Notes: a model not told the origin generated them from the letters alone. Shown: positions 1 through 21,094, numbered from the stretch's first letter. The stretch: 23,133 nucleotides of DNA from Selaginella moellendorffii (GCF_000143415.4 NW_003314406.1:291532-314664); one strand, 5' to 3'. Made by a program: numbers and translations.

Positions 1-23
1 AGCTCTATTTCGTTAAAGTGGGA
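1..23 (+). repeat. Left terminal inverted repeat (may extend beyond the window start)
   Basis: 23/23 match to the reverse complement of 10287-10309. Confidence 0.9.
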
Positions 24-659
24 TTTATTCAGTAAAATGGGACTAGGTACAAATTTTCAAGTATTTGAAAATGACGTGAAATTATATGTTTTTTGTCCAG
101 GGGCTAGACATATCTGGGGCATGGTGACTAGCGCGGTGACCTTATGTCCAGACTGAGTCCATCTAGTTGTATAATAAATCTCATTGTCAAGGTGAACAAG
201 CCGAATCTGAAGCTAAAGAAGAGCGATGGCATGCGCGCACACACTATTTGTTTGTTCATTGAGCGTGTGGTGAGCTTTCCAAGATGAACATCATTCCTAT
301 TAGCCAGACATATAACTTAATGGTGAGAACATTTAGATATTATTCAATGTTATCTTTTTCTAACGAATCTAATTGTGAAGGTGTAGCAAGAGGCATTGCT
401 AGTCTGGAGAAGTCATTTAACTCATTTGACCCTTAGTGTATTTTCATGAAACTAAATAACATTCATATTATTAAGGAAATTCTCTAGTACCTTTTTTTTA
501 CGACATAGAGGCTTGCATTTCTTTCAAAGGTGATTTAGTAAAAGGCCTGAGGGCACATGCCATTCTATTTCTCAGACCGGTATTAAGATATACTAGTGCA
601 AAGGGAAAAAGGTATTTGGTGATCAAGTAAATGGCATGAGGGCACACGCCATTATAAGC

Positions 660-917
660 CTAAGCGCTAGTGGACACCTCCTTTTTGGTACTCTCAGCGG
701 TACTATCATCCTTCTCCGGGTCAGTTGTTTTGCTTTGGATTGTTGTCTCTGACGTTACTGGGGCGTTCTCGATAGTTGTTAATGTTGCCGTTTGTTCAGA
801 AAAATGATCACCTGGAGTATAGTACGGGGAGTTTGGAAGACTTATATATTCTACATCTTCACCTATCTCCTTCTCCGTCTCCTTTTCTGCCTCACTTACA
901 GATTTTGTGCTTGCCAT
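660..917 (-). CDS. Possible small S/T/E-rich ORF (85 aa) downstream of the transposase
   Basis: ATG at 917 to stop at 660 (MASTKSVSEAEKETEKEIGEDVEYISLPNSPYYTPG...). Composition is biased and disordered-like, and the ORF is flanked by palindrome copies. No recognised homology. Confidence 0.3.
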   Translation of the reverse strand: MASTKSVSEAEKETEKEIGEDVEYISLPNSPYYTPGDHFSEQTATLTTIENAPVTSETTIQSKTTDPEKDDSTAESTKKEVSTSA

Positions 918-1132
918 GAGAACGCTCTTCACCCTAAAATATGGAGTTCGTTGTGTTATAAAAGGAAACCAACACACACGCTGCAAGGGAATGATGGTAC
1001 ATAAAGCACGTAAGCCCACAATATGGGTTTATGTGCCATTAATATGGGCCACACGCCATATTATTAGATTTATGCACGTGTGATTGGTAAATGCATATGT
1101 CACATCATCTTTGTTTTACCTCACACACTATA

Positions 1133-4100
1133 TCAAGCCTCCTCTGATTCAGATTCGGATTGTTCACCTTGAAATAAAATACATTAGAAACTTTGTAAAG
1201 GAATATTAATGAATCTCACCTTGAACCCGAGTTATGAATGCTCTTGCTGCATCTCTTGCATGGTCTGGCAAGGTGATGGTGGCACTCTGCTTCCGCATCC
1301 AACCATGCACAACATTATCCACCGATATGCTCATGCTGGGATCCCTTGGATTCAGCACCCATCTCTTTTCTAGGCAATCCTTCGTATATCCGGAACTTGG
1401 CTTGAACCACTCCACAGTTACATTGAAGGAGTTAGTTTCCGCGTCCTCCTCTGCATCAGTGATGCAGCGCCCCACCCATATCATTTGTTTTTTATTACTG
1501 GGTCTGACAAGCACGACCATTCCTTTGCAGACCTGTACTGGATTGAATGCTGAATCCGGCTTCTTGTTCCTCGGCCCACAATAGTGATCCTCAACATCGT
1601 TATCTGTCACTGCATTTCCAGAGGACATTGTTCCGCTACTATCTGGTGCTCTTGGTTCTGGCCAAAAGGACTCTTCCAATTCTTCATATACAACCGGCCC
1701 ATTTTGGATAGCAGATATAATCTTCTCCCAGTATTCGAGCAAAGGCTTGCACCTCTGAAAATAGGATTCTCCACCAAACACCAACCCCCTCTTCCAGAAG
1801 GCAATATGCTGTCTAATCCCGGCCACTATACTTTCCTGGTCTTTGAGTCCATCCGGGTGCATCGGCCGTGGGGAACCCTGAGGAATCATAGGTTCCCCAG
1901 TTATGGGATCTCTCTTGAAGAGTTCAATGCCGTCCACTGGCAACCACACTGTGTCCCATTCTCTCATCTTGTACCTCATCACTGGAGCACCGTCACACAT
2001 GCTGAAATGAAACTGAAGAGGCTTGGAGTGGCCAATCAGCGTTTCGGATCCATCCCTGATGTAGCCTCTTACAAACCCCTTAAAGTCTGGAACCTCTGTC
2101 AGAAGTGCAGCTTCAACAGTGCCTTTGATGCAATTTTGGAATTCATCGTAGAGTTGTGGGAGGGTGAGGACATTGGATCGCCGGAGGGACTCTGCCAGGT
2201 GACTGAACATGGCATCGACGTCTTCATGAGTGTGCCCAACCATGAGAAAGCCAAGTGTAACCGTTTCAAATATGCCTTTGGCAACAAGCATCGCCAAGTA
2301 CGCGAAGACGTACATGTTTTTGTTCTCACTGCCAGCATTGTCTGTTTGGAGCAGAAGATGGGGTGGAAGGCCACATCGGCCGCAAGAACTTCCTTGAGAT
2401 TCTGCTTCGTTTGGATGAGGCTGTGCATTCACCGGGCGACCAGCCTCGTCGGAATGGCATGAGGCCTCACGTGATAACCCTACAATCTGACGGCCAACAT
2501 ATTCACTGGGATGGCATGGGGCCCCACGCGATACTGCAAGCCTTTGCTCCTCCTCCAGCTGAACCCTGTATGGGGTTCGATCGACAAGGGCCTTATGCAA
2601 GGGTTGGCCATTCAGCTCAGTCTGCGCACTTTGCAGAGACCTTAAGTGTTTTGCTAGGGACGCAATCATCATGTTTGCACCCCCGCCACCCCATAGAGGT
2701 ACAAAGAAGTTCCCATAGTTCTGGGCACCATGCCCATGAGCGATTATGCCAAACAGAGACACAGGCAGCTGCATGGATGAAGAGATTGCCTTGGGGGCAG
2801 GATTGAGTCGAGGTAAGCACGTCTTTTTCTGGTCCATTTTGTCGTGGATGATGCAGAGGTAAGAGTCAGGTCTCTCCATGGAGAGAATCCTGTTATGATA
2901 ATATGCAGTCCTGCAGCTTCTCTGCTCGATGTTGTGGTCGAGCCGCCTTCTAACCAACGTCTCTCGCTCTTGAGCGCTGCAAGAATTCTTCGACAAAGCC
3001 ATTTTGATAGCAGTGCACTCGTCACACTTTGAAAAGCCTGGAGTACTTTCCTATACTCACATCCCTGAACCTGTTGCTCCACAATCTACTAAATCTAGAT
3101 GNNNNNNNNNNNNNNNNNNNNNNNNNNNNNNNNNNNNNNNNNNNNNNNNNNNNNNNNNNNNNNNNNNNNNNNNNNNNNNNNNNNNNNNNNNNNNNNNNNN
3201 NCAGCTTCCTGTAGCCATTACTCTGGAGTTCCCGATTCACATCTTCCAATATGGCCCCCTTGGTATACATGGAAGGGAGAACTCGTTGGGTGTCTCGTGT
3301 TCCATCTTCCAAGAGGCGGGTTTTATGTGGTTGCTGCTCGCTACATGTCTCGACAAACCTCTTGAAGATTGCCTCTCCATATACAACATGACCCCTGGTT
3401 TTGTGCGTACCGTCGTTCCCATGGACTGCCTGTTGAACCCTTTGTTCCTCGAACTCAGTTTTGATTCTGTAGAATGTGCTTCGAGGGACTCCATAAATGA
3501 TTCTCCATGCCTTCATGCAGACCAAACCCCTCTGGAAGACCATGCCCCCCACCTGATGTTCTGAAGCATCAACAGATGACCGTAATGCCTCATACACAAA
3601 ATTGCGAGCTACCTTCCAGGACAATGTCTTGTATCTTGCTCTCTCCTCTTCAATAGCATCCCAATCAGCATGTTGACAGCACCTCCTCTTGCAACAAGCA
3701 ACTGTTGAGACCATTCGAACCTCCATCGCCATTTTCTGCCTTTTCGGTTCGTTGCTCAGATCCCTTTGGCTGCGCTTTAGGAAGGTGTACTTTCTTTTCC
3801 CATGAAGAGATGTTCTGTCATCAGTTGTAGTGGTGTTTGATTGTGAATCCTTCACATTCTCAAACACTAAGTGCCTCAATTTCCACCGCACAATGCTTCC
3901 AATAGTCAGACTGTTTTCTTCTGTGTCAACAACCTCTAAAATCGCAACTCCAATATCATCCCAGCCCAATTCTTGATTAGCAACCGCATCTCTTGGATCG
4001 ACAATTGTGGCTAAGCCCTCAGCTACCACCTCCCCCTCGGGGTTGTTTAGAAACACTTTTGCCTGAATCCATGTAGCACGGTTCTTAAGATCCACGGAGG

Positions 4101-4371
4101 GAACATGCGTCGCACTTGCGCTGTCCCCAACATCTGCTTTCTTCTGAAGATTTTTCAAGGCAACAACAACATTTACCCCGACGACCATCTCTCCTCGTTC
4201 AATAGCGACCACATTCCCATCGAAGACAGTCTCTACTGATACAGCAGCATTGCCTTCCCCAAGCCTTTCACAGTGTATAACAAAGTTCCGATCCATAGAC
4301 ACAAGGGTCCCTTTTGCAACTCTCTTCCCACCATTCAAAATGTAAACCTTTTCCCCAACCCTGAAGGCCAT
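1133..4371 (-). CDS. Sola1-like/DUF7869-type DDD transposase (~1000 aa), one apparent +1 frameshift at ~3036
   Basis: ORFs 3022-4371 and 1206-3002 join if one base at 3036 is removed, giving KYSRFSKCDECTAIKMALSK. Motifs seen: CCKRRC, VCMKAWRIIYGVPRSTFYR (HTH-like), HGNDG, IIHDKMDQKK (D1), LQTDNAGSENKN (D2), FLMVGHTHEDVDAMFS (D3). A probable 52-bp terminal intron at 1168-1219 adds GEQSESESEEA* ending at 1133; unspliced, the stop is at 1206. A splice acceptor (TTTCAG) immediately precedes the ATG at 4371. Confidence 0.85.
3102..3201. other. Assembly gap (100 N placeholder)
   Basis: Run of N. The flanking peptides YRKL / SRFSRLW suggest the true gap is only a few bases. Confidence 0.95.
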
Positions 4372-4737
4372 TCTGAAAGTGCAGAAAAGAAGTTAAGACC
4401 ATACAAAAAATGATTGGAGAATGGCCTAAATCATAACATACCAAACAACCTCAATAGCATGAGGCCACATGCCATTATTCAAACATGCTATTGACACCCA
4501 CGTGAAATTTCGCATTCACAAAATTGGCATGAGGCCTCATGCCATCTTGATATACACATAGCTGCAGGCAAGTAAAAACATACATGACAATACGCTAGCC
4601 ATGAAATTGCAAGGGCCCAAGATGGCATGTGGCCTCATGCCATTTCTAAATGTGGTCCTAAGCCATTCCATGGTGAACATACCAGGAAGCACAAGTGCCG
4701 AATATCAAGAGGAAGCGGTAGCCACACCAAAGACAGT

Positions 4738-4870
4738 GCCGCTCGCAACACCGCAACTACTCGTAGCGCCGCTCGCAACACCGCAACTGCTCGTAGCGCC
4801 GCTCGCACAAACTGCCACTCGCATAAACTGCCGCTCGCAATGGCGCTCGCAATGCCGCAACCGCTCGTAG
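4738..4870. repeat. GC-rich minisatellite (30-bp unit GCCGCTCGCAACACCGCAACTRCTCGTAGC x2 plus degenerate GCTCGCA sub-repeats)
   Basis: Tandem units at 4738-4767 and 4768-4797, followed by decayed copies. Lies upstream of the transposase ATG. Confidence 0.85.
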
Positions 4871-5161
4871 ACGCATAAACCACAGCCCACAACGCCGCTT
4901 ACACAAGCAGCGCTCACTGCGCTCAGCGGAACCAAGAACACGGCGCACAAAAATGATAGACCTAGGAATGAGTTCGAGAATTCAAAAATAACACACGCTT
5001 GAACGTCACATCAAATCCTCTGACAAACCAGATCTTATGATTCCTCTGACAAATTTCAAACTGAGTAGCTTCTAGACTTTGCTGTCGGAGGTTGAACTTT
5101 GTCACATCATGTCCTTGCCTCGATCCAGCTGTGCCATGTCAGTGATTTGAACTTTGCCATG

Positions 5162-5179
5162 CCATGTCAGCGATCCGCG
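5162..5179 (+). promoter_or_regulatory. Plant histone-promoter type I-like element (hexamer plus reverse octamer)
   Basis: CCATGTCAGCGATCCGCG versus the consensus CCACGTCANCGATCCGCG: one C>T mismatch, at a CpG. A degenerate copy lies at ~5134. Confidence 0.5.
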
Positions 5180-5244
5180 CCAAGATTATTCGCCGTGTAA
5201 AGGAATAATTACGCTGTGTGTGTACGTCCATTTATGGCAATATA

Positions 5245-6635
5245 AGGCCACACGCCATTCAAAGAATAATGCTCGACATAAGCCCACACGCCATTCAAAG
5301 AATAATGCTAGTCGAGCATTTTTTGGTGCATTTTTGGGTTCAAAATTGCATGAGCCCACACGCTATAAAGTTTACCTGTACCAAAAATAGAAACAGCTTT
5401 ATTTACTTGGGAATTTAAGTGGTTGAGGCATTTTTAAACTTACAAACACATGCCCTACTTACATTCCTTTGGTTGCCTAAAATTCAAAAATATTATAAAC
5501 CTTTCTTTTTGCATTTTCAATGTTTTCAATTATGGTTTTTGATTTTCGTAGGACCAGCCTAGTAATCTATTTGCATCCCGTCATGTTTATAGCTAGCTTT
5601 CGTTCGTCCCCTTCGCTAGCCTGAGATACATCTGCTCGGCATCTGCCTCTTACAGCATTTGCCCAGAAAGGGCATCTTTCTTCACGCAGCATTTGCCACA
5701 TGTTTAGGGTTTAGGGTTTAGGGTTTAGGGTTTAGCAATTCAGTAGCTTGATAAACATGCAAATACAGAACTTGATGCAAAATCCTTTGATATGTCACAA
5801 TGCCCCTAGGACCATAAACACATTTCAATAGAGAGGGTCTTTTCATTTCATAACTCCTTACGTAGATCTTGGTGAAACCAGAGTTAGTGAAGTTAGTTTC
5901 TTGTGATCCCGCATCTGATTGTGATGTCCCTTTGCAGTTTCGATGGAAAGGTCAATGCACACCAAACTGTGAAATCTTGGAGCAAAATAACGGTCGGATC
6001 TATGGCAAATGCCCCTGAAACATTGTAAGGCTCGTGTGGTCTCATGTGGTGTCCGATTGAGATGCTTCTTTGCAGGGTCATCAAGAAAGACATTGTATAC
6101 CATTCTGTAAAATCTAGTTGCGATCTAACGGTTGGATCTCCAGAAAACTCAAAAAAATCTCGCGCGTGTCAGAATATCCTAGGAATATACTCCTATGTGC
6201 CCCTGAAAATGGCATGCGGCCCCACACCATTCAAGAGATAACACTAGATGACGCCGAGAATTTTTTGGTGCATTTTTTGGGTTCAAAATTGCATGAGCCC
6301 ACACGCTATAAAGTTTATCTTTGCCAAATAGAGAAAAGTTTATCTGTGTCATGTGAGGTAGTTACAGTCCTTTGTGCTCGGCATCTGCCTCTTGCAGCAT
6401 TTGCACTGAAAGGGAATTTTTCTCCATTCAGCATTTGGCCCTGAAAATGGCATGCGCCCACACGCCATTCAAGGAATAACGCCACAGGACGCCTGGATTT
6501 TTGGGTTTAAAATGTTTAGGGTTTTTTGGGTTTTTTCAAAATATTTTGGGTCCAACGTTTTTTGGGTTTCTTTGGTTCAAAATTGCATGAGCCCACACGC
6601 TATAATATTGATTTGAGAGAAAAATAGAAACAGAT
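5245..6635 (+). repeat. Three degenerate direct copies of an intergenic block, each with paired palindromes
   Basis: ...CACRCCATTCAA...TTTTTGGGTTCAAAATTGCATGAGCCCACACGCTATAA occurs at ~5245-5398, ~6200-6340 and ~6440-6635. TGCTCGGCATCTGCCTCTT.CAGCATTTGC is repeated at ~5633 and ~6375. Confidence 0.85.
5702..5735 (+). repeat. Interstitial plant telomeric repeat G(TTTAGGG)4TTTAG (telo-box array)
   Basis: Read directly. Degenerate TTTAGGG/TTTTGGG runs also occur at ~6500-6570. Confidence 0.95.
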
Positions 6636-6895
6636 AGAATTTCTTTATTTAGCTGAACATCTGCCATTTTTGGAAATACAAGATGCTTTGGAATATCCAA
6701 TCATGCATGGTATAAATATAGCGAGGGTATTAAATGATATCCCAATCATGATCTTTCTTTTGGATTTCGCGTGCATGCAGTCCGAGGAATGATGACGTTG
6801 CGGATTTCTTTTGGATTTTGCGTGCTTGCATGCGCGCGGCAATCCAGAAATTAATGGTGGCGCCCAAGTCCGAGGAATGATGACGTGGCGGGATA

Positions 6896-7855
6896 NNNNN
6901 NNNNNNNNNNNNNNNNNNNNNNNNNNNNNNNNNNNNNNNNNNNNNNNNNNNNNNNNNNNNNNNNNNNNNNNNNNNNNNNNNNNNNNNNNNNNNNNNNNNN
7001 NNNNNNNNNNNNNNNNNNNNNNNNNNNNNNNNNNNNNNNNNNNNNNNNNNNNNNNNNNNNNNNNNNNNNNNNNNNNNNNNNNNNNNNNNNNNNNNNNNNN
7101 NNNNNNNNNNNNNNNNNNNNNNNNNNNNNNNNNNNNNNNNNNNNNNNNNNNNNNNNNNNNNNNNNNNNNNNNNNNNNNNNNNNNNNNNNNNNNNNNNNNN
7201 NNNNNNNNNNNNNNNNNNNNNNNNNNNNNNNNNNNNNNNNNNNNNNNNNNNNNNNNNNNNNNNNNNNNNNNNNNNNNNNNNNNNNNNNNNNNNNNNNNNN
7301 NNNNNNNNNNNNNNNNNNNNNNNNNNNNNNNNNNNNNNNNNNNNNNNNNNNNNNNNNNNNNNNNNNNNNNNNNNNNNNNNNNNNNNNNNNNNNNNNNNNN
7401 NNNNNNNNNNNNNNNNNNNNNNNNNNNNNNNNNNNNNNNNNNNNNNNNNNNNNNNNNNNNNNNNNNNNNNNNNNNNNNNNNNNNNNNNNNNNNNNNNNNN
7501 NNNNNNNNNNNNNNNNNNNNNNNNNNNNNNNNNNNNNNNNNNNNNNNNNNNNNNNNNNNNNNNNNNNNNNNNNNNNNNNNNNNNNNNNNNNNNNNNNNNN
7601 NNNNNNNNNNNNNNNNNNNNNNNNNNNNNNNNNNNNNNNNNNNNNNNNNNNNNNNNNNNNNNNNNNNNNNNNNNNNNNNNNNNNNNNNNNNNNNNNNNNN
7701 NNNNNNNNNNNNNNNNNNNNNNNNNNNNNNNNNNNNNNNNNNNNNNNNNNNNNNNNNNNNNNNNNNNNNNNNNNNNNNNNNNNNNNNNNNNNNNNNNNNN
7801 NNNNNNNNNNNNNNNNNNNNNNNNNNNNNNNNNNNNNNNNNNNNNNNNNNNNNNN
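6896..7855. other. Assembly gap (960 N), probably hiding the cargo gene 5' end
   Basis: Run of N. Confidence 0.99.
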
Positions 7856-9879
7856 ACAGCAATCCAGCCTGAGCAGCCTATGGAAGAAATGCAAGAGGGG
7901 GATGAGGAGCCAGAGAAAGATAATGAGCAGGAAGAGCAGAAGGACGAAGAGGAGGACGAAGAAGAGGAGGACGAAGAAGAGGAGGACGAAGAGGACTTGG
8001 ATGGTCCTCACAATGGTGACGATCACAATAACGACGATGACGATGATGACGATGATGGCCAGCCTGAGGTGGCCAAAGAGCAGCGGAGGAAGGTCATACA
8101 AGACAAACCATCAGGTAAATAATAGTACATCCATTCCTAACCTTTTACCATTTCTAACATTGTCCATGTAGGTCGCAGAAGAAATGGTAAGTAGAGATTA
8201 TTCAGTTGAATTAAGATACAAACTCTAGCCTTTAGTGTCGAGGAAGGATAGTGCCAAGCAAGGGTCGAAACGTATGTCCAATCCTTCAGAATCAGCAGTG
8301 CGCCCAAGTGATATCGGTCCTAGTTCCTCAATAGCAGTTGATGGTAAATACAGTATAGTCGATTCAATGTGCTAATGAGTTTGTTTTTAGTAGCCAGTAG
8401 GGAGGATACCATCTCAATCGAAGGGAGATATTTGGACATGCATATGGATCCGCCAATGGACTCTACTTGCCTGCAAGAGTCATCAAAGCTGGTGGAGGCT
8501 ACTATCCATATCAACGCCAAGCAAGCTGACCACGCTCCACTTGATGCTGCCCATACCACTGAGTCAATCTTGTCCACGTATCCAACTGACGGTGACCAGG
8601 CGCCATTGGACCCGCATGAGGCCGCCCCAGCCGCCGAGCCGGTCGTATCCTCATTTCCAACGTGTGCCCAATCGTCTGACTACGCGCCGTTGGAACCACC
8701 CTACACCGCCCCTGCTGCCTGTTCGGTCATGTCCACTTTGCCAACGGAGGCACCAGCTGAAATGGCGTGTGATCACACGCCATCGGAACCACCCCATGCC
8801 ACTGTTGAGCCAGTTGTACCAGAGTCTACAGCTGAAATGGCATGTGCCCACACGCCATCGGATGCGATTGACCCCACATTGCAGAGGAGAGTATTTCCGC
8901 CCTTCACGTTTCCTCGACCAAAACCCTCTGAACGACCATCGGGAGCACCATTCGCTAATATTGTAGATGGTAAAATTGACTTGTACCATTTTTTATGCTA
9001 ACGCATTTCATTTCAGAGTCACGGCGAAAGTACTGTATCGTTTTTGATCTGAACGGTGTCCTTTTCTCCCATGAGCGTGGCTCGTCCTCGAATGTCACTG
9101 CACCCTCCAAAGCCTGCGGTCGCAAGTTGGTCAAAAGAGACAGATTCACATTAATCACACGGGAGAAACTGCGGGATCTAATAATGACCATGCGACACTT
9201 AAAACAGAGGGCCGGGTTCAATTTGCAATTGGGAGTTTGGACATCCATGATGCGCCACAATGCATTAACGTTGCTACAGATGATGCACGATCAGACGCGA
9301 GTAATATTACCATTTGACTTTCTCCTAACGCAGGAGGATTGCTTGACTATGGTCCATGTGAGGGGTAGCAAGCCCATCTTCGTCAAGGCAGAGGCTGTAG
9401 TGATGAACCGGACTGCTAGGTCAAGTGAACTCCTCATCATCGATGACTCGCCGATTAAAACTGCAGCGAACATGCACACATATGCAGTGCACCCCATCTC
9501 TTGCAGTATGGAAACTAGGGAGAAGAAACCGTATGTTCTGGGGGACCTTGCAAAACGGCTTGAAGCGATGGTGATAGAGAACCGGCCAGTCCAGGAGGTG
9601 GCTGCAGAAATCAACCAAATGGCAGATGGAACGGTATATCAGAAGCCATTTGATCGGACAGACACCAGTCATCATTTATGGCATGTATATTGTCTAGCCA
9701 AGCACTATCCACATCTCCATAATCTGCTCAACCGGATGGGTTCTTCGACCACTGAACATGAGCGTGGACGTATTAGAGAAGAGATGGCATTACTATTGGG
9801 TTTAAATCCTGATAGTGTGGAGAGTGATGAAATTCCAAGATTATTGTATAGGCGTTGGAGGCAAAAAATAACAGTCTGA
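7856..9879 (+). CDS. Spliced transposon cargo gene: acidic D/E tract, Pro/Ala-rich repeats and a C-terminal FCP1/SCP (NIF)-like HAD phosphatase-fold domain; 5' end may lie in the gap
   Basis: Predicted exons: <=7856/7880-8114, 8172-8186, 8236-8343, 8391(or 8394)-8969, 9017-9879. All four GT-AG introns are 47-57 bp and phase 1, and they splice into one open frame. HAD motifs: CIVFDLNGVL (I), LGVWTS (II), IFVK (III), LLIIDDSPIK (IV). Confidence 0.8.
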
Positions 9880-10286
9880 GATGGCATGTATTTATTTAAA
9901 AATGTAACTTATTATGGCATGGGGTTCCATGCCATTGTATTAATATTAAAAGACAATTCTTTGAGAGGATTTGCATTATACTAGAAGTGTTACAGCATGT
10001 TATTGGAAGTCTACGAAGTTGTTTTATTAATAAGGGGAAAGTAAAGATTGAATGGGGACTTGGGCTCCACCTAGACTCGGAGCAACTGAGCCAATATTAA
10101 AAGGATGGAAAGAAATTGGACGACGATGACAAGGAGAAGAGAGAGGTGAAGCAGTGAGAAGTGATTGAGTAGACATTTCCTTGTTTAAAATAAAATGGCA
10201 TGTGCCTCAATGCAGTTGAATTTTGTTATATTTATATACTATATAAAGGTTTGGAAACCTTATTTTACAAGTGGGATAATGACAAT

Positions 10287-10309
10287 TCCCACTTTAACGA
10301 AATAGAGCT
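10287..10309 (-). repeat. Right terminal inverted repeat
   Basis: TCCCACTTTAACGAAATAGAGCT is the reverse complement of 1-23. A second, inverted AAGTGGGA copy lies at 10269-10276. Confidence 0.9.
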
Positions 10310-10657
10310 TTTGGGTGACCAATGATGAACAGGAACCTTGATTGGACGAGCATCCCTGGTTGGAATCGGATGACATGTGGCAATTTTGGCCCCAGACGAT
10401 AGGTCAAATTCAAAGAGATTAAAATACTCCTTCATGAGCCAGTCAACCATTGCAACACAAAGATCGTCAGAGGGATCGGAAAAAGGAAGAGAAGAACAAG
10501 ATGGAAACATAGGAGGAAATAGTGGGGGAACAAAAGTAATGGAAGCAGAGGTAGAAGTAGAGGGACAAAGAGGTACGGAAGTGAAAGGAATGGATGAAAC
10601 ATAAAGAAGTATGAGATAAGGGGGAGAAGCCTCAAAGTCACACTTGGCATGATTGCG

Positions 10658-10957
10658 CTACAACCAATCCATACCAAAAATGAGGTCAAAAGCTTGACTC
10701 GGCACAACCCGCAACGACTGCAACTCAAGCTCGAGATCGCCCAGATGCACAACTAGGTCCGCCTCATCCCGTGCACATGCATGTGTATAGCCGTTGCCAT
10801 AAAGAATAAAAACTGATTCCGCCACATGACACAAGTGTAGACGATAACGTGTGGCAACAGGTCGAGCAATAAAAGATAAACTCGAACCTATATCAACCAA
10901 CACAGAGAGAATAATAAGAGACCTCTTGTTATAAAAACGAGCTTGGAAAGTAAACAC
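10658..10957 (-). pseudogene. Retroviral-type aspartic protease remnant
   Basis: VLVDIGSSLSFI (D[S/T]G changed to DIG) and FDLIFGMDWL motifs. Confidence 0.85.
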
Positions 10958-11178
10958 TGGATGAACTAGTGCCGAGTGAACCCCTTAATGATACTCCTGA
11001 AAGAAAGATGGAGGGGTCACTGACTTATTCGCGCAAAGTCCCTCCATTACTCATGCAACTCCTCATTTCCCGGATGCATCTCAGTGTTCAAACTGTCCAC
11101 TACAATAACACTAATGGGACGTTGCTGACACCAAGGTCTCCACCCAGGAAATGGAGGTCGCCAATCCGGAAAATGCCA

Positions 11179-11886
11179 ACAATGCCGATAAATATGACCA
11201 ACTTCATCATACGCCCAACAGCAAACATCATGGCCACGACCTCGTCTTTGCCCTTGTCCTTGGACTCAAGCAGCAGCAGCATCAACCTCCATTGGAACAG
11301 AACCATCACCCATAGGAAGTGGAGCTAAAGGACATGCAACGAGAAGTGGAAGAGGCGACGTCTCATAATGTTGTGCCAAATGAAAAGCGTCATCAAAGGT
11401 GGCGGGAGCAAGTGCATGCACAAGTCAGACAAAATCTTGACGAAGTGCTGGCCAAAACATTCCTAGCTTGATCCGCTCCAACATATTTGGCTCTACACGA
11501 AAAAAAAGACTTCGGAAACAAACGCCAAATTGCATCACCAACTTAGATGGCCCTTGGCGAAGACGATGCAATTGTTGGAAGGCATCATCACAGTCATTGG
11601 CATGTCCGAAGGCGCATTTGACAACGTCCGGGAGAACACTCCAATCCCTACAAGTGGCTGCGCTTAAACCATTGTACCATTGCAATGCTGTCCCGTTGAG
11701 ACACGTGGGAAACTCACGCAAACATCGAGCATCATCCCAAGAATGATATGTGGCAATCACCGTGAAGTGATCAAACCAATGGTACATATCATCCCCAAGA
11801 GTCTCATGAAAGAACTCCTGCCGAACACGAGGATTGGCACCAAGAGCAAGAGGAGTTGTACCACATGCCATGAACGTTGCCATCAA
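11179..11886 (-). pseudogene. gag remnant (capsid plus decayed CCHC knuckle)
   Basis: HWFDHF...WDDARCLREFPTCLNGTALQWY...LHRLRQGPS retrotransposon gag pattern. CWAYDEVGHIYRHC at 11179-11220 is CX2CX4HX4C with C>Y. Confidence 0.85.
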
Positions 11887-12387: not shown

Positions 12388-15300
12388 AACAACAAATAGT
12401 TAAAATTATTAATTCCTCTACTTTAAGTTAGAATATATCATATTTTTATTGACATTATTTTCCCTAGATTATAATTAAACAAATTTATGTTTTTAAATTA
12501 TACTTAGTTTTTTTTAAAAAATTAATAAAAGATCTCTATAAATACGTAGTAGTTATTTTTTTAATATTTAGGTTAATTTTTTAGAAATTTGTATATGAAA
12601 TCCTCTCATTTGATGACAGGAATATTTATTCTTTGTAAGAGAGATAGTTAAAATTCAGAGCATTATATTATATATCATTAAAATTCTTTTATATTTTGTA
12701 TAGAGCAAATGAATTAACATATTAAATCTACGATTCAATTAATTTATTTAAATTTCTGGCATCATAACAATGTTATTGAGGCTAAAAGATTTCACAAAAG
12801 GTGAATTCTTACTTTGATATTAGGGTATTGATTATACAGAATCTTTTTTTTTAACCATAACATATCAGAAAATTTAAAAATTGTCCATAGATTAATTTAA
12901 TAATAAGAAAAGCTAAAGTGATGATGAATGACATTTTTTTTAGATAGTAGCCTTTTGTATTGTGTCTATTGTTGTTTCAATCATATCTTTAACTTTACAT
13001 CATTATTTTTTTAATATGTTTTTCATGTATCAATGCACAAATTATTAGTCTTAATAAAGTATTATAACTTTATGATATTGCACAAATCTTACACTATATT
13101 TGAGGTAACCGACAACTCAATGTGATTAGATTTATTGATGAATGTGTAATAAGTATTATAAGATTATTTTAAAAAATAAAACTAATTTACAATATATGGC
13201 AAAAGTTACATATCACTTTGTCAAGTTAAAATAGCTGAAGCTATTCAACTCTTCTATTTTAACTTATTAAATATTTCATGTTGTATTGTCTGTACTTATT
13301 TAATTTAATGTTATAGTATATTGCTTCATGTGTCTGCTATATACCATCTTTATACAACAAAATTATGTTTAATTTTATTAATGAAGTATGATGATGCTGA
13401 GATTCCAGCTCTGCTAGAAATTATAGATTAAAATAAATATCAAAAAATTCCAAAAGAAAATTAATTATATTTTTAGTGATTTCTTTAGATATTACAATAA
13501 TTTTTGAAATGAATAGTTTTAATTAGTTTATGGTATACTTGTAAAACTTTATATGAGTAATGGAGAGAGTAGTTTTTTGAATAATGTTTAGTGCTAATAA
13601 GTTTAAAGTTTATTAAGTGCATAAGAATAAGTCTAATACTATTTTAAAACCTTTTATAAGAAACAATAAAACGGAATATACCAATAATTATTAATTAAAA
13701 GTTACTCTTTTATATTTCTCATTTGCAGAGATTATATTGAGTCTATGCATGAAATGGAAGCCCACTTTCAATGAAGCATAAAGCAATTTTTAATTATAGT
13801 GTAAAGTTGTGTGTATTTAGAGAAAAAAGTGCTCCACCAAGGAGAAGAACATCAATTTACAGGTAAAGAGTATATTTGTTTGGAAAGAGTAGGATTATTT
13901 TTGTTTACCCATTATCAGAGAAATTAAAGTAGGCTCTGATTTACAGGGAATGTGGTTTAGCTTTCAAAGTTTCTACAGACAGGTGGTTATCCATTACATT
14001 TCATAAAAGGGCTTTTGGAAACATTGAGTGAAAGTGAAGTCCTCTTCACATGGTAATGGTTTGAGGTTTCTTTCTGTAGCCTCCTATAAGAACTCTCAGC
14101 TTGTCCGAATCTGATTCAAAGATCTGTTTCTAGAGGATTCTCATGCAACTAAATTCAACAGGTGGTAAAGATCATATGGAGAAATGGCTGTATACCTTTA
14201 AGTCAGTGATAGACCTTGCTATGATAATAATCTGTGTCATCATTGAAGTGTTTGGTCCTGAGTCCTGGCTAAGAACCATACTCTTGGTTGAATCTAGTGC
14301 CACAGTCAATGCTTTGATTCCTTACACAGCATTCCTTACATGGCCTTGATTGTGTCTGTAGGAAAATCTGGGATTCCAGATCAATTTGTCTCTACAGAAA
14401 AACAACCTTGCTGCTAGAAAAAAATAAAACCAACCAGCAGCTGGTGCTTCAGTTTGGTTCTTCCAGGTCTTTTTGAGGGAAATAATAGTTCTTAGCTTCA
14501 TTAATGCATTGTTTAAAGACGGGAAATCAAAATCAATAATTGATGTTATTATTTGTCTGTTTTGTAATATAAACACAAGAAAAATGACTGTCAGACTTGA
14601 GCGTAAGAAACTTGCCTGGTTGTTTTTGTGCTCATTTGTGTGAGTCTCAAAGAGACAGAGAAGTGAGTTTATACGTCGCTGCAATTTTGTTCTGTCATGC
14701 CACATCCATAGAGAGACAAAATTTATGTGGAGATGCAGCAGCTGGACAGGCAAATGAAAGGTACCTCTAAGACACCAAAGTGGAGGCCATTTTTTGGATA
14801 AACAAAAAACAGATGTGCGACCTCCAATGCCAGACCTGCGAACTGAATTGCCTTGGTCCATCAACCTTGAGGCACGACTGAATTGCCTGCGCAATGTAGG
14901 AAAGACATTGGAAAGGAGACAAGGGCTTTTTAGCCAGGAGACTTTATTGTATATACAATGATGGCCAGCTGATAATCCAGTGAGCAATAGGTTTAATGTA
15001 CTTAGTTGAGCCCTCCAAAACACTCTTGCAAGTTAAGCAAGAACCCAAGGTTGCCATATGAAGATTGTGCCAAGCACTGAGCAGCAAAGATGCGGTCCAC
15101 GTTTGCTCAGATTCTCGATGAATTCCACAAGACAATGTGGGAATCATCAAGCTTGTATAAGCCCATGCTGACCATTTGCATTTAATCTACTTTCTACATT
15201 GAAGATCCACTGAAGGCCATGTTTTCTTGAGGTTCTTTCTCTCATTGTCTCACATCTTGTACGAAAGCATTGAGATGGTGACGATACAGTGCCTGGCCCA

Positions 15301-15832: not shown

Positions 15833-16690
15833 ATGCAATCTTCCAGTGTGGTAGCCAGGAGCAGCACGTTTACGGGCAGGAGGGCCAGGTTTTCCATGGA
15901 TCAGCTGTGCTGCTGCCGCCCCCCACAGCGGCCCCTGCCAAGGAATCTCTCCAGCTCGTGACAAGGGAGGAGTGATTGGGGCTCTACGAGGACATGATCC
16001 CTGGTCAGATGTATTATAGGAGCAAGATGTTTGTATTTGTACAGCAATGGACAGGAGGCCGTGTCCACAGGATTCGTCAAGGCACTCAAGGAGGACTACA
16101 TTTGCAGCACTTACTGAAATCACATCCACGCGCTGAGAAAAGGTGTCCCTGCCAGGCAAGTGATGAGCGAGCTCTTCAGCAAATCCACTGGCTGGGCACG
16201 GCCAAGGTGGATCCATGCATATGTTCTCCGCTGCTAGGAGGATTTGCTTTCATCGGTAATGGGATCCCCGTGGCGACTGGAGCAGCCTTCTCAACCAAGT
16301 TCTTGCGGGAAGTTCTCAAGGATCTCAGTGTGAACGCAGTGACGCTGGCGTTTTCAGGGATGGGACTTGCAACAATGGGCAGTTCTTGGAGTGCTTGGAC
16401 ATGGCGGTGCTGTGGAAGCTGCCAATTGTCCACGTGGTGGAGAACAACCTCTGAGCGATCGGCATGGACCACTTTTGAGCTATGTCAGTGCTGGATATCT
16501 GGAAGAAAAGAGAGGCTTTTGTATGCATGGAGTTCACGTCGATGGAATGGACGTGCTCAAAGTCAGCGAGGTGGCCAAGGAAGCCATTGCGAGAGCTTGG
16601 AGGGGTGACAGCCCGACATTAGTGGAGTGTGAGACTTATTGGTATATAGAGGTCATTCTCTCACCGATCTGGACGAGCTCTGGAAGCCTG
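15833..16690 (+). pseudogene. Plastid pyruvate dehydrogenase E1 alpha subunit pseudogene (5' exon only)
   Basis: Read across frames: transit-peptide-like [110 protein letters not shown] (TPP-binding motif), HVDGMDVLKV, PTLVECETY, RGHSLTDLDEL. Many stops and frameshifts. Ends at the donor G|GTAAGT (16691). Confidence 0.92.
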
Positions 16691-16751
16691 GTAAGTGCCT
16701 TGCTTTGTTCTTCGTGGATAACACCATGAAGCGGAACCTAAACCCTTTTTG

Positions 16752-20356: not shown

Positions 20357-21094
20357 AATAACTCTGAGGTTCAGGGCCTTGAGCCACTGAACGAAGGAAC
20401 GGTGCCAAACTCCCAAGCGTAAAGCCAAAGAGTGGTGGAACTGAACCACGGAGCAACTCCCGAGTGTAAAGCCCAAGAAGCGTAGGGACAGGAGCCCAGA
20501 GTGACTTGGAACAGTCCTGGAGCAACCAGCATCCTAATGCCAGGACTAGCACGCAAAACGGTGCCAAACGGAGTCTGGCACTATTTCGGCATACCGGTGG
20601 CCTAACGCGAAGACATGGGTACTCCACCAGCTAGCATGGTGTGGAACCTGGGCTTAGACCCAAGCCGGACGCAGAACAAGGACAAGCACGCAAGCGGGAG
20701 CTAAACTTTGCCTCAGGTTGGTCGGCCATGTCCGACCTACCCACTATCCCTACTATACATTTGGANNNNNNNNNNNNNNNNNNNNNNNNNNNNNNNNNNN
20801 NNNNNNNNNNNNNNNNNNNNNNNNNNNNNNNNNNNNNNNNNNNNNNNNNNNNNNNNNNNNNNNNNCATGAGTTTCTCATCACCGTGTCAAGTTTGCTTGA
20901 CTAAATGACAACTTAGGATTTCCTTCCTTAGTGCCCTTCTGGTCTAAGTGCACATGTGATGACCAGTTTCTCAACTAGCTTAGGCGGAGACTAATAACGG
21001 GTCTAACAATACCAACCTTTTGCCATCGTGGCAGTAAGGTAAAAGTGTCCGTAAGGACGGGTCGACAGGTAACTTTCGATACCCGAAGTCACAT
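20357..21094 (-). repeat. Right direct repeat (putative 5' LTR, incomplete)
   Basis: By hand count, 27 differences in 400 bp versus 16801-17200 and 5 differences in ~228 bp versus ~17568-17795. Confidence 0.8.
20766..20865. other. Assembly gap (100 N placeholder, ~370 bp by comparison with the left repeat)
   Basis: Run of N. The flanks map to 17200 and ~17568 in the left copy. Confidence 0.95.

Follow-up and report, generated by a model that had tools for sequence, protein, structure and literature searches.

A DUF7869 (Sola1-like) transposon of Selaginella moellendorffii with an FCP1-like accessory domain and its own array of palindromes

The stretch of DNA analyzed in the present study, 23,133 nucleotides of Selaginella moellendorffii (GCF_000143415.4 NW_003314406.1:291532-314664) and hereafter called the window, begins with one copy (positions 1-10309) of a cut-and-paste DNA transposon that is young and repeated, has two genes and, by its transposase, belongs to the DUF7869 (Sola1-like) lineage. 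The transposase gene lies on the minus strand, while a second, accessory gene runs divergently from it on the plus strand and ends in an FCP1/SCP-like domain. Scattered over both genes and the sequence around them are copies of one palindrome, and the relatives of the transposase that we compared are each accompanied by a palindrome of their own. We see about an even chance that these palindromes are read by a dimer encoded by the element itself, most probably by part of the transposase.

The transposon copy and its transposase

The element is enclosed by two terminal inverted repeats (TIRs). The left one (1..26, plus strand) starts AGCTCTATTTCGTTAAAGTGGGA..., also written AGCTCTATTTCGTTAAAGTGG..., and the right one (10284..10309, minus strand) is followed by the flank TTTGGGTG.... 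Over their 26 nt the two are 96% complementary and in the first 23 nt perfectly so, which bears out the perfect 23-bp TIRs of the original prediction, an earlier reading of this DNA by a model. A second copy of the family was recovered as positions 1-3577 of Logan contig ERR10900155_18243 (L001; its product is P0001), which aligns to window positions 4545-4363, 4120-3202, 3097-2142 and 133-1 at 97.6-100% identity. L001 is 100% identical to window 1-133, its homology ends right after ...AATAGAGCT, and the flank then differs (TAAAGACA...), being unrelated to the flank of the window's right TIR. Since two independent insertions, that of the window and that of L001, agree on it, the terminus ...AATAGAGCT is supported.

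Window positions 134-2141 and 243 nt near 4120-4363 are gone from L001, which is therefore regarded as an internal-deletion derivative, as cut-and-paste families produce. The 243-nt difference (4120-4363) was also considered as an intron; it has no GT-AG ends and was accordingly scored as a deletion. An exact-protein search with the window's open reading frames (ORFs) 8995-9876 and 1209-3002 found neither on record and returned only P0001/L001, and a metagenome scan with the TIR gave 0 matches.

The transposase gene (1206..4371, minus strand) comprises about 1,020 codons, apparently in one exon, and is broken in the window by a gap and a frameshift, so that it appears as ORFs 3022-4371 and 1206-3002. 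Its catalytic core is Pfam DUF7869 (1959..2369, minus strand; residues 212-348 of ORF 1206-3002, E=1.4e-42). Homologues number 70, the best of which, beyond the near-identical P0001, reach about 40% identity and come from environmental assemblies; those with names include a protein of the liverwort Calypogeia fissa and several animal and algal proteins, animal DUF7869 proteins among them. The homologue alignment shows D54/D57 (IIHDKMDQ), D221-N222 (LQxDN) and GHTHE-D261-x-D263 with little or no variation, and the window copy has each of these residues. The Pfam match, the TIRs and these acidic residues uphold the predicted TIR DNA transposon with a DUF7869 (Sola1-like) transposase.

Toward its N-terminus the protein has a Cys-rich CCxxxCC motif and a helix-turn-helix-like stretch, both common to plant and animal homologues. 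Its first about 175 residues (3847-4371, minus strand) form two similar beta-rich repeats, for which Pfam returns a weak match to TNP1/En-Spm Transposase_23 (E=0.073); relatives have DUF8039 there. A further 3' transposase exon at 660-1019 was considered and rejected, the homologues ending where ORF 1206-3002 ends.

Runs of N occupy 3102-3201, 6896-7855 and 20766-20865 of the window. Gap 1 (3102..3201), with its 100 N, interrupts the transposase gene. The 4 nt and 100 N of the window correspond to 8 nt in L001, which puts the missing sequence at about 4 nt. Because P0001 reads YRKL-SQF-RFSRLW in one frame across this place, the transposase gene is continuous there in the sister copy. The frameshift of the window copy is due to an extra base at 3037..3038 (minus-strand gene; CC on the plus strand, GG on the coding strand), where L001 has ...CTCCAGCTTTTC... 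and the window ...CTCCAGGCTTTTC...; relative to L001 the shift is +1, and frame 1 then stops at 3022-3024. As written, the window copy cannot make the transposase because of this frameshift. A point against reading the copy as frameshifted is that the extra base is possibly a sequencing or assembly error, since the site is only about 60 nt from a contig end.

L001 in turn has its own frameshifting deletion, of 7 nt at window 2365-2371. The two copies, each broken once and at a different place, imply that the ancestral ORF was continuous, at about 1,020 codons. Between window and L001, 16 differences are synonymous and 14 non-synonymous, far more synonymous than under neutral decay, which argues that the lineage diverged under selection for a working transposase.

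Gap 2 (6896..7855; 960 N, the length being an estimate) conceals the 5' part of the accessory gene, and exact-protein, sequence-set and metagenome searches found no second copy of this region. Because the family is repeated, the scaffold may join two different copies across gap 2. The element length of 10.3 kb includes 1,060 placeholder Ns and, as gap 2 is not closed, is no measured length. Of the complete 10.3-kb element that had been predicted, the TIRs at both ends therefore stand, while completeness is undone by the two gaps, the one frameshift and the 1,060 Ns in the length; the window copy, gapped as it is, is probably defective.

As for membership of Sola1, AAAGTGG starts 14 nt from the tip in the window TIR; AAAGT likewise stands 14 nt from the tip in the Sola1 TIR of A. 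cephalotes (GACCATTTATTCTGAAAGT), and in other insect Sola1 TIRs (GGACCGTTTATTTTGAAAGTGG...) AAAGTGG is found one base further in, at 15 nt (PMC3845634). The window and A. cephalotes TIRs are identical at 10/19 positions, a Sola1-typical terminus that is weak evidence of membership. In its architecture the element matches Ectocarpus Sola1-1_Ec32, a further point in favour. Two points weigh against the assignment. According to the passage of PMC3845634 that cites Bao et al. 2009, Sola1 elements make a 4-bp target-site duplication with AWWT preference; the single flanks seen here, TTTG in the window and TTTA in L001, are unlike such a duplication, neither being AWWT (the left flank lies outside the window). 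In addition, the equation of DUF7869 with Sola1 would rest on likeness to Ectocarpus Sola1-1_Ec32. No mention of DUF7869 was found in the literature searched.

The palindrome array and its possible reader

The palindrome, ATGGCRTG-N6-CAYGCCAT (22 bp; arms ATGGCATG-N6-CATGCCAT; site ATGGCATGAGGCCTCATGCCAT), occurs at 16 sites with up to 2 mismatches, all of them within 226-9935, against 0.03 expected from shuffles, and at the same threshold we found none in the remaining 12.8 kb of the window. About 20 are present when weaker sites are counted, in agreement with the predicted element-confined set of that number, and six are perfect. The half-site was met 26 times inside the element and once outside. 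The TIRs themselves are without the palindrome.

Downstream of the transposase stop, sites begin at 226, 542 and 631 (range 226..652), with a weaker one at 1039. Two more (2454 and 2511; range 2454..2532) fall within the transposase ORF, in a variable linker that is present but not conserved in the homologues (alignment columns 620-740), and three (4454, 4524 and 4622; range 4454..4643) lie 83-251 nt upstream of the transposase ATG. The divergent intergenic region shared by the two genes (4372..6895, neither strand) contains repeated modules carrying the palindrome, with sites at 5345, 6209, 6288, 6447 and 6582 (range 5345..6603) and half-sites at 5251 and 5287; its repeats include tandem 30/16/12-nt units at 4738-4858 and duplicated 70-73-nt modules at 6195-6630. 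The predicted arrangement of two divergent genes around a repeat-rich intergenic region was thus recovered, with the transposase on the minus and the NIF-domain gene on the plus strand. Two sites (8762 and 8837; range 8762..8858), both perfect and each encoding ...AEMACxHTPS..., fall in the fourth exon of the accessory gene, and the 3' untranslated region of that gene, together with the right subterminal region, holds a perfect site at 9914 and a degenerate one at 10195 (range 9914..10216). All 4 palindromes within the L001-aligned segments are kept in L001, including both linker sites. In a metagenome scan the palindrome pattern met with single chance sites per contig only.

Two other repeats were noticed in these regions. 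A short run of plant telomere-type TTTAGGG repeats lies at 5701-5736, within the intergenic region. Downstream of the transposase stop, a 25-nt inverted repeat (187-211 / 1148-1172, 96% complementary) brackets 936 nt with four palindromes; it may represent a nested insertion or form a long stem, and no flanking duplication was seen beside it.

Three further contigs (L003, L004 and L005) encode transposases about 32-37% identical to that of the window, and each has a palindrome that differs from all the others at a similar size of 20-24 bp: CCTATGGC-N6-GCCATAGG at 20 sites in L003, GGTATCGTCG-N3-CGACGATACC at 9 sites in L004, and TCACGAACCATGGTTCGTGA at 7 sites in L005, the contig from C. fissa, the chance expectation being about 0 for each. 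A second element on L004 shows a variant, GTATCGGCGG..., at several sites. With regard to accessory genes, tblastn with the visible cargo against L003, L004 and L005 found no similarity, and Pfam on their upstream ORFs found no ParB, methyltransferase or NIF domain. On L005 the stretch upstream of the transposase holds no ORF of at least 110 amino acids, and downstream comes an unrelated chromovirus, yet the transposase gene has palindromes on either side. Across the four loci compared, a palindrome array stands beside every transposase, but a recognisable accessory gene does not, and accessory genes may differ between lineages. A search for TIRs and target-site duplications of L003-L005 gave none that was convincing.

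L004, a 166-kb environmental contig, deserves two further remarks. Its DUF7869 elements lie at 1160-5750 and 14597-15193 and have palindrome arms GTATCGTCG and GTATCGGCG, respectively, a difference that looks like recent site divergence between sister elements. Its ORF 1675-2619 (minus strand), upstream of and divergent from the transposase, yields weak leads to Ulp1/C48-type peptidases (Atlas 0.81-0.86) and a Pfam YopJ match at E=0.054.

The anatomy, the folds, the palindrome enrichment and the differing palindromes of the relatives are observed; for the binder of the palindromes and the action of the phosphatase-like domain we infer the following course. The transposase would recognise the AAAGTGGGA-type termini for cutting, and the palindromes would be places, particular to the family, at which an element-encoded protein docks as a dimer, most likely an N-terminal DNA-binding part of the transposase. 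Docking may then provide a private self-recognition, by which the transposition complex is assembled and/or the element's own divergent promoter is switched on. The accessory protein would be a lineage-specific add-on, whose phosphatase-like domain might act on a protein substrate at the element, e.g., the transcription machinery. The transposase is favoured over the cargo as the docking protein because the relatives differ in palindrome and the liverwort one is without a recognisable second gene. Some points nevertheless tell against this course: as the TIRs are without the palindrome, its binding by the transposase has to be assumed in addition; gap 2 conceals the cargo gene's 5' part; and L005 may be a decayed copy that has lost its accessory gene, small exons being of a kind that would escape the ORF screen.

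It is possible, though we hold it with reserve, that the accessory protein reads the palindromes, a hidden ParB-like N-terminal module docking on them as a dimer, as ParB does on parS. Such a protein might, and here we are just as tentative, bring methyltransferase-like and FCP1-like domains to the chromatin of the element and keep it transcribed, in a VANC-like anti-silencing. The spread of the palindromes over the whole element at intervals of at most 2 kb, rather than at its ends only, speaks for such a reader, as does their absence from the TIRs. What can be seen of the gene is intact, with no subfamily-conserved residue lost, and precedents can be named in Ectocarpus Sola1-1_Ec32, the red-algal Plavaka PAG3 and the VANC motif arrays, all described below. 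Yet no ParB-like sequence is visible in the window, and the module would have to lie in gap 2; moreover, L003-L005 possess their arrays in spite of the negative Pfam and tblastn results, and L005 seems to be without any accessory gene. The original idea of the cargo as reader of the palindromes is thereby weakened, since relatives with other or no recognisable accessory genes keep palindromes of their own.

That host transcription factor sites were gathered here as promoter/enhancer modules, with no element-encoded reader, strikes us as very unlikely. Many sites do occur in intergenic modules that are duplicated, or just before the transposase start, and several copies have CATG/TGCATG cores (TGCATG in the variants at 5345, 6288 and 6582), but others stand in 3' regions and coding linkers, and palindromes that are wholly different in each relative at a similar size fit a co-evolving element-encoded reader better. 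We likewise think it highly improbable that the array is functionless, a by-product of local duplication of hairpin-forming sequence in a decaying element. The sites are spread out over 9.7 kb and have unrelated surroundings, six of them are perfect, they are kept in L001, and analogous arrays recur in transposase relatives of about 32-37% identity, all of which is hard to square with such an origin, even if some sites are found in tandemly duplicated modules and the window copy is defective. Both of these readings are made less likely by the change of palindrome, at similar size, from one relative to the next. If an element-encoded protein reads the palindromes, these families would constitute a natural set of orthogonal protein/DNA-site pairs, with one palindrome per family, and would provide the second land-plant case, after VANC, of a transposon marking and regulating only its own copies.

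The accessory gene and its precedents

The visible 3' part of the accessory gene (7856..9879, plus strand) consists of five exons (7856-8114, 8172-8186, 8236-8343, 8391-8969 and 9017-9879, plus strand) and 607 codons, with no stop. Its four introns are all GT-AG and in phase 1, and the frame is already open where gap 2 ends. In the visible product an acidic tract is followed by a disordered linker, basic/Ser-rich and Pro-rich, and this by the C-terminal NIF domain; Pfam on the visible exons upstream of this domain found nothing. In the region 7856-10700, a probable-RNA run (X19) holds 28% of the sampled cargo-region words and another (X20) 5%, a sharing of words which hints that the cargo region is transcribed.

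The NIF domain (FCP1/SCP-like, HAD-fold; 9031..9477, plus strand) was detected by Pfam at E=1.3e-5, scoring 25.4 bits where the cutoff is 21.8. Among 1.84 billion representatives, 10 weak matches were found (best E=1.8e-6), all of them NIF proteins and none in a transposon context; the best is a Sphagnum host-gene cluster, and another is a Morus FCP1-like protein. Against a 5.8-billion set the NIF ORF had one weak match only, P0081, an unrelated cellular gene on a compact eukaryotic contig. An AlphaFold (AF2) model of the domain has a predicted local distance difference test score (pLDDT) of 75 and a predicted template-modelling score (pTM) of 0.69. With this model Foldseek retrieved SCP1/CTDNEP1/TIM50/FCP1 at E ~2e-8 and probability 1.0, with template-modelling scores by target of 0.62-0.67 to SCP1/2/3, and its Swiss-Prot matches were Nem1/CTDSPL. 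At the level of this predicted structure, the phosphatase fold of the C-terminal domain is confirmed. The phosphatase-fold cargo of the original prediction thus stands as far as the fold is concerned (Pfam and Foldseek); as a gene it is seen in its 3' 607 codons, the 5' part being in gap 2.

Motif I of the domain has the form D-x-N-G (FDLNG at 9043-9057). It departs from the canonical DxDx(T/V), FDLNGVL having Asn in place of the second Asp, and for this reason ordinary phosphatase chemistry is uncertain; the motif III Lys (K123) and the motif IV Asp-Asp (D142-D143) are in place. Since D-x-N-G is common to 11/11 aligned homologues, the Asn is a mark of the subfamily and not a sign of damage. 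Invariant in the alignment are D10, N12, G13, W74, N81, Q105, K123, D142, D143 and K147, and all are present in the transposon protein. The domain therefore resembles the FCP1/SCP/CTDNEP1/TIM50 (NIF, PF03031) HAD phosphatases in its fold and in its motif III and IV residues, and the plant D-x-N-G relatives (Sphagnum fallax KAH8970694.1 and Morus notabilis EXB99777.1) in its form of motif I. It differs from both groups in being only 21-28% identical to them and in being the C-terminal domain of a transposon gene. Searchable papers yielded no report of an FCP1-like domain as transposon cargo.

Which relatives come first depends on the method. In the ESM Atlas the clusters nearest to 9019-9876 (plus strand) are giant-virus NIF proteins (score 0.96, 209 shared features), whereas HMMER leads to plant host proteins, e.g., that of Sphagnum.

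Internal sites for element proteins, distinct from the TIR tips, are familiar from plant transposons, namely the 12-bp motifs of TNPA in En/Spm and the subterminal AAACGG of Ac. These subterminal sites are needed for transposition and autoregulation and do not extend beyond a few hundred bp from either end, whereas the palindromes described here occupy the central promoter region and coding linkers as well.

The closest precedent is Ectocarpus Sola1-1_Ec32 (Dinatale et al. 2025; PMC12477816), in which an opposite-strand accessory gene encodes a ParB-like/DNA-methyltransferase protein, proposed by the authors to bind and modify its own element. The description of Sola elements as transposase-only, on which the original prediction had relied, is hence outdated. 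Both are large TIR elements with the accessory gene opposite to the transposase strand (in the window, 4371 to 1206 versus 7856-9879). The Ectocarpus protein combines ParB-like and methyltransferase parts and has no phosphatase-like domain, and for its element no dispersed palindrome array is reported; the window, compared by architecture, shows an acidic linker and an FCP1-like domain only, and its host is a land plant.

In the red alga Bostrychia, PAG3 of a Plavaka (KDZ) element combines a ParB-like N-terminus with an enzyme domain beside inverted-repeat arrays, and its authors propose that PAG3 binds its own transposon (10.1101/2025.02.11.637652). Plavaka belongs to a different transposase superfamily, its repeats are tandem beside the gene and not scattered, and its enzyme is a 2-oxoglutarate (2OG) oxygenase. 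VANC of Arabidopsis VANDAL (Mutator-like) is an anti-silencing protein acting with family-specific motif arrays (Hosaka et al. 2017, PMC5735166). The likeness is that a DNA transposon of a land plant has an accessory protein and short motifs multiplied in non-coding DNA, motifs which differ between related families; on the other side, transposase and accessory protein are unrelated, and the VANC motifs are short and non-palindromic. The function of VANC was shown experimentally, whereas the window element is known from sequence alone.

Set against Ectocarpus, Plavaka and VANDAL, what is new is that the host is a land plant, that an FCP1-like D-x-N-G domain is present and that sites are placed over the whole element, coding linkers included. 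The prediction of a distinct plant lineage with an accessory protein and its own cis-target array accordingly holds for the divergent accessory gene and the private array, and less so for novelty, the main parts of the architecture being known from algae. We consider it rather doubtful that a non-seed land-plant Sola1-like lineage has a private code of the full kind, in which a dimer that reads the family's own 20-24-bp palindrome would recruit a D-x-N-G FCP1-like (pseudo)phosphatase and so reprogramme transcription or silencing of the element, as a sequence-specific anti-silencing that evolved independently of VANC. The FCP1-like cargo is a hint that the element interferes locally with protein phosphorylation. 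The window copy has gaps and is without the informative 5' half of its cargo gene.

The insertion site

The element sits at the very start of the reverse transcriptase (RT) domain in the pol of a Ty3/gypsy-like retrotransposon, of which gag, protease and the first RT residues follow on the right (10310..11886, minus strand). Pfam Retrotrans_gag matches at 11425-11886 (E=1.6e-7); the protease motifs ...VLVDIGSS... and ...FGMDWL in ORF 10658-10957 and the RT-start-like ...HPIPTRDARPIKVPVHHWSP in ORF 10265-10510 were recognised by eye. These gag, protease and RT-start motifs of the right flank agree with the predicted insertion in a gypsy RT. Farther along the window, among retrotransposon debris, an ORF fragment at 16367-16729 (plus strand) matches Pfam E1_dh (dehydrogenase E1 component, E=1.9e-11) and could be an exon of a host gene or a piece that was captured.

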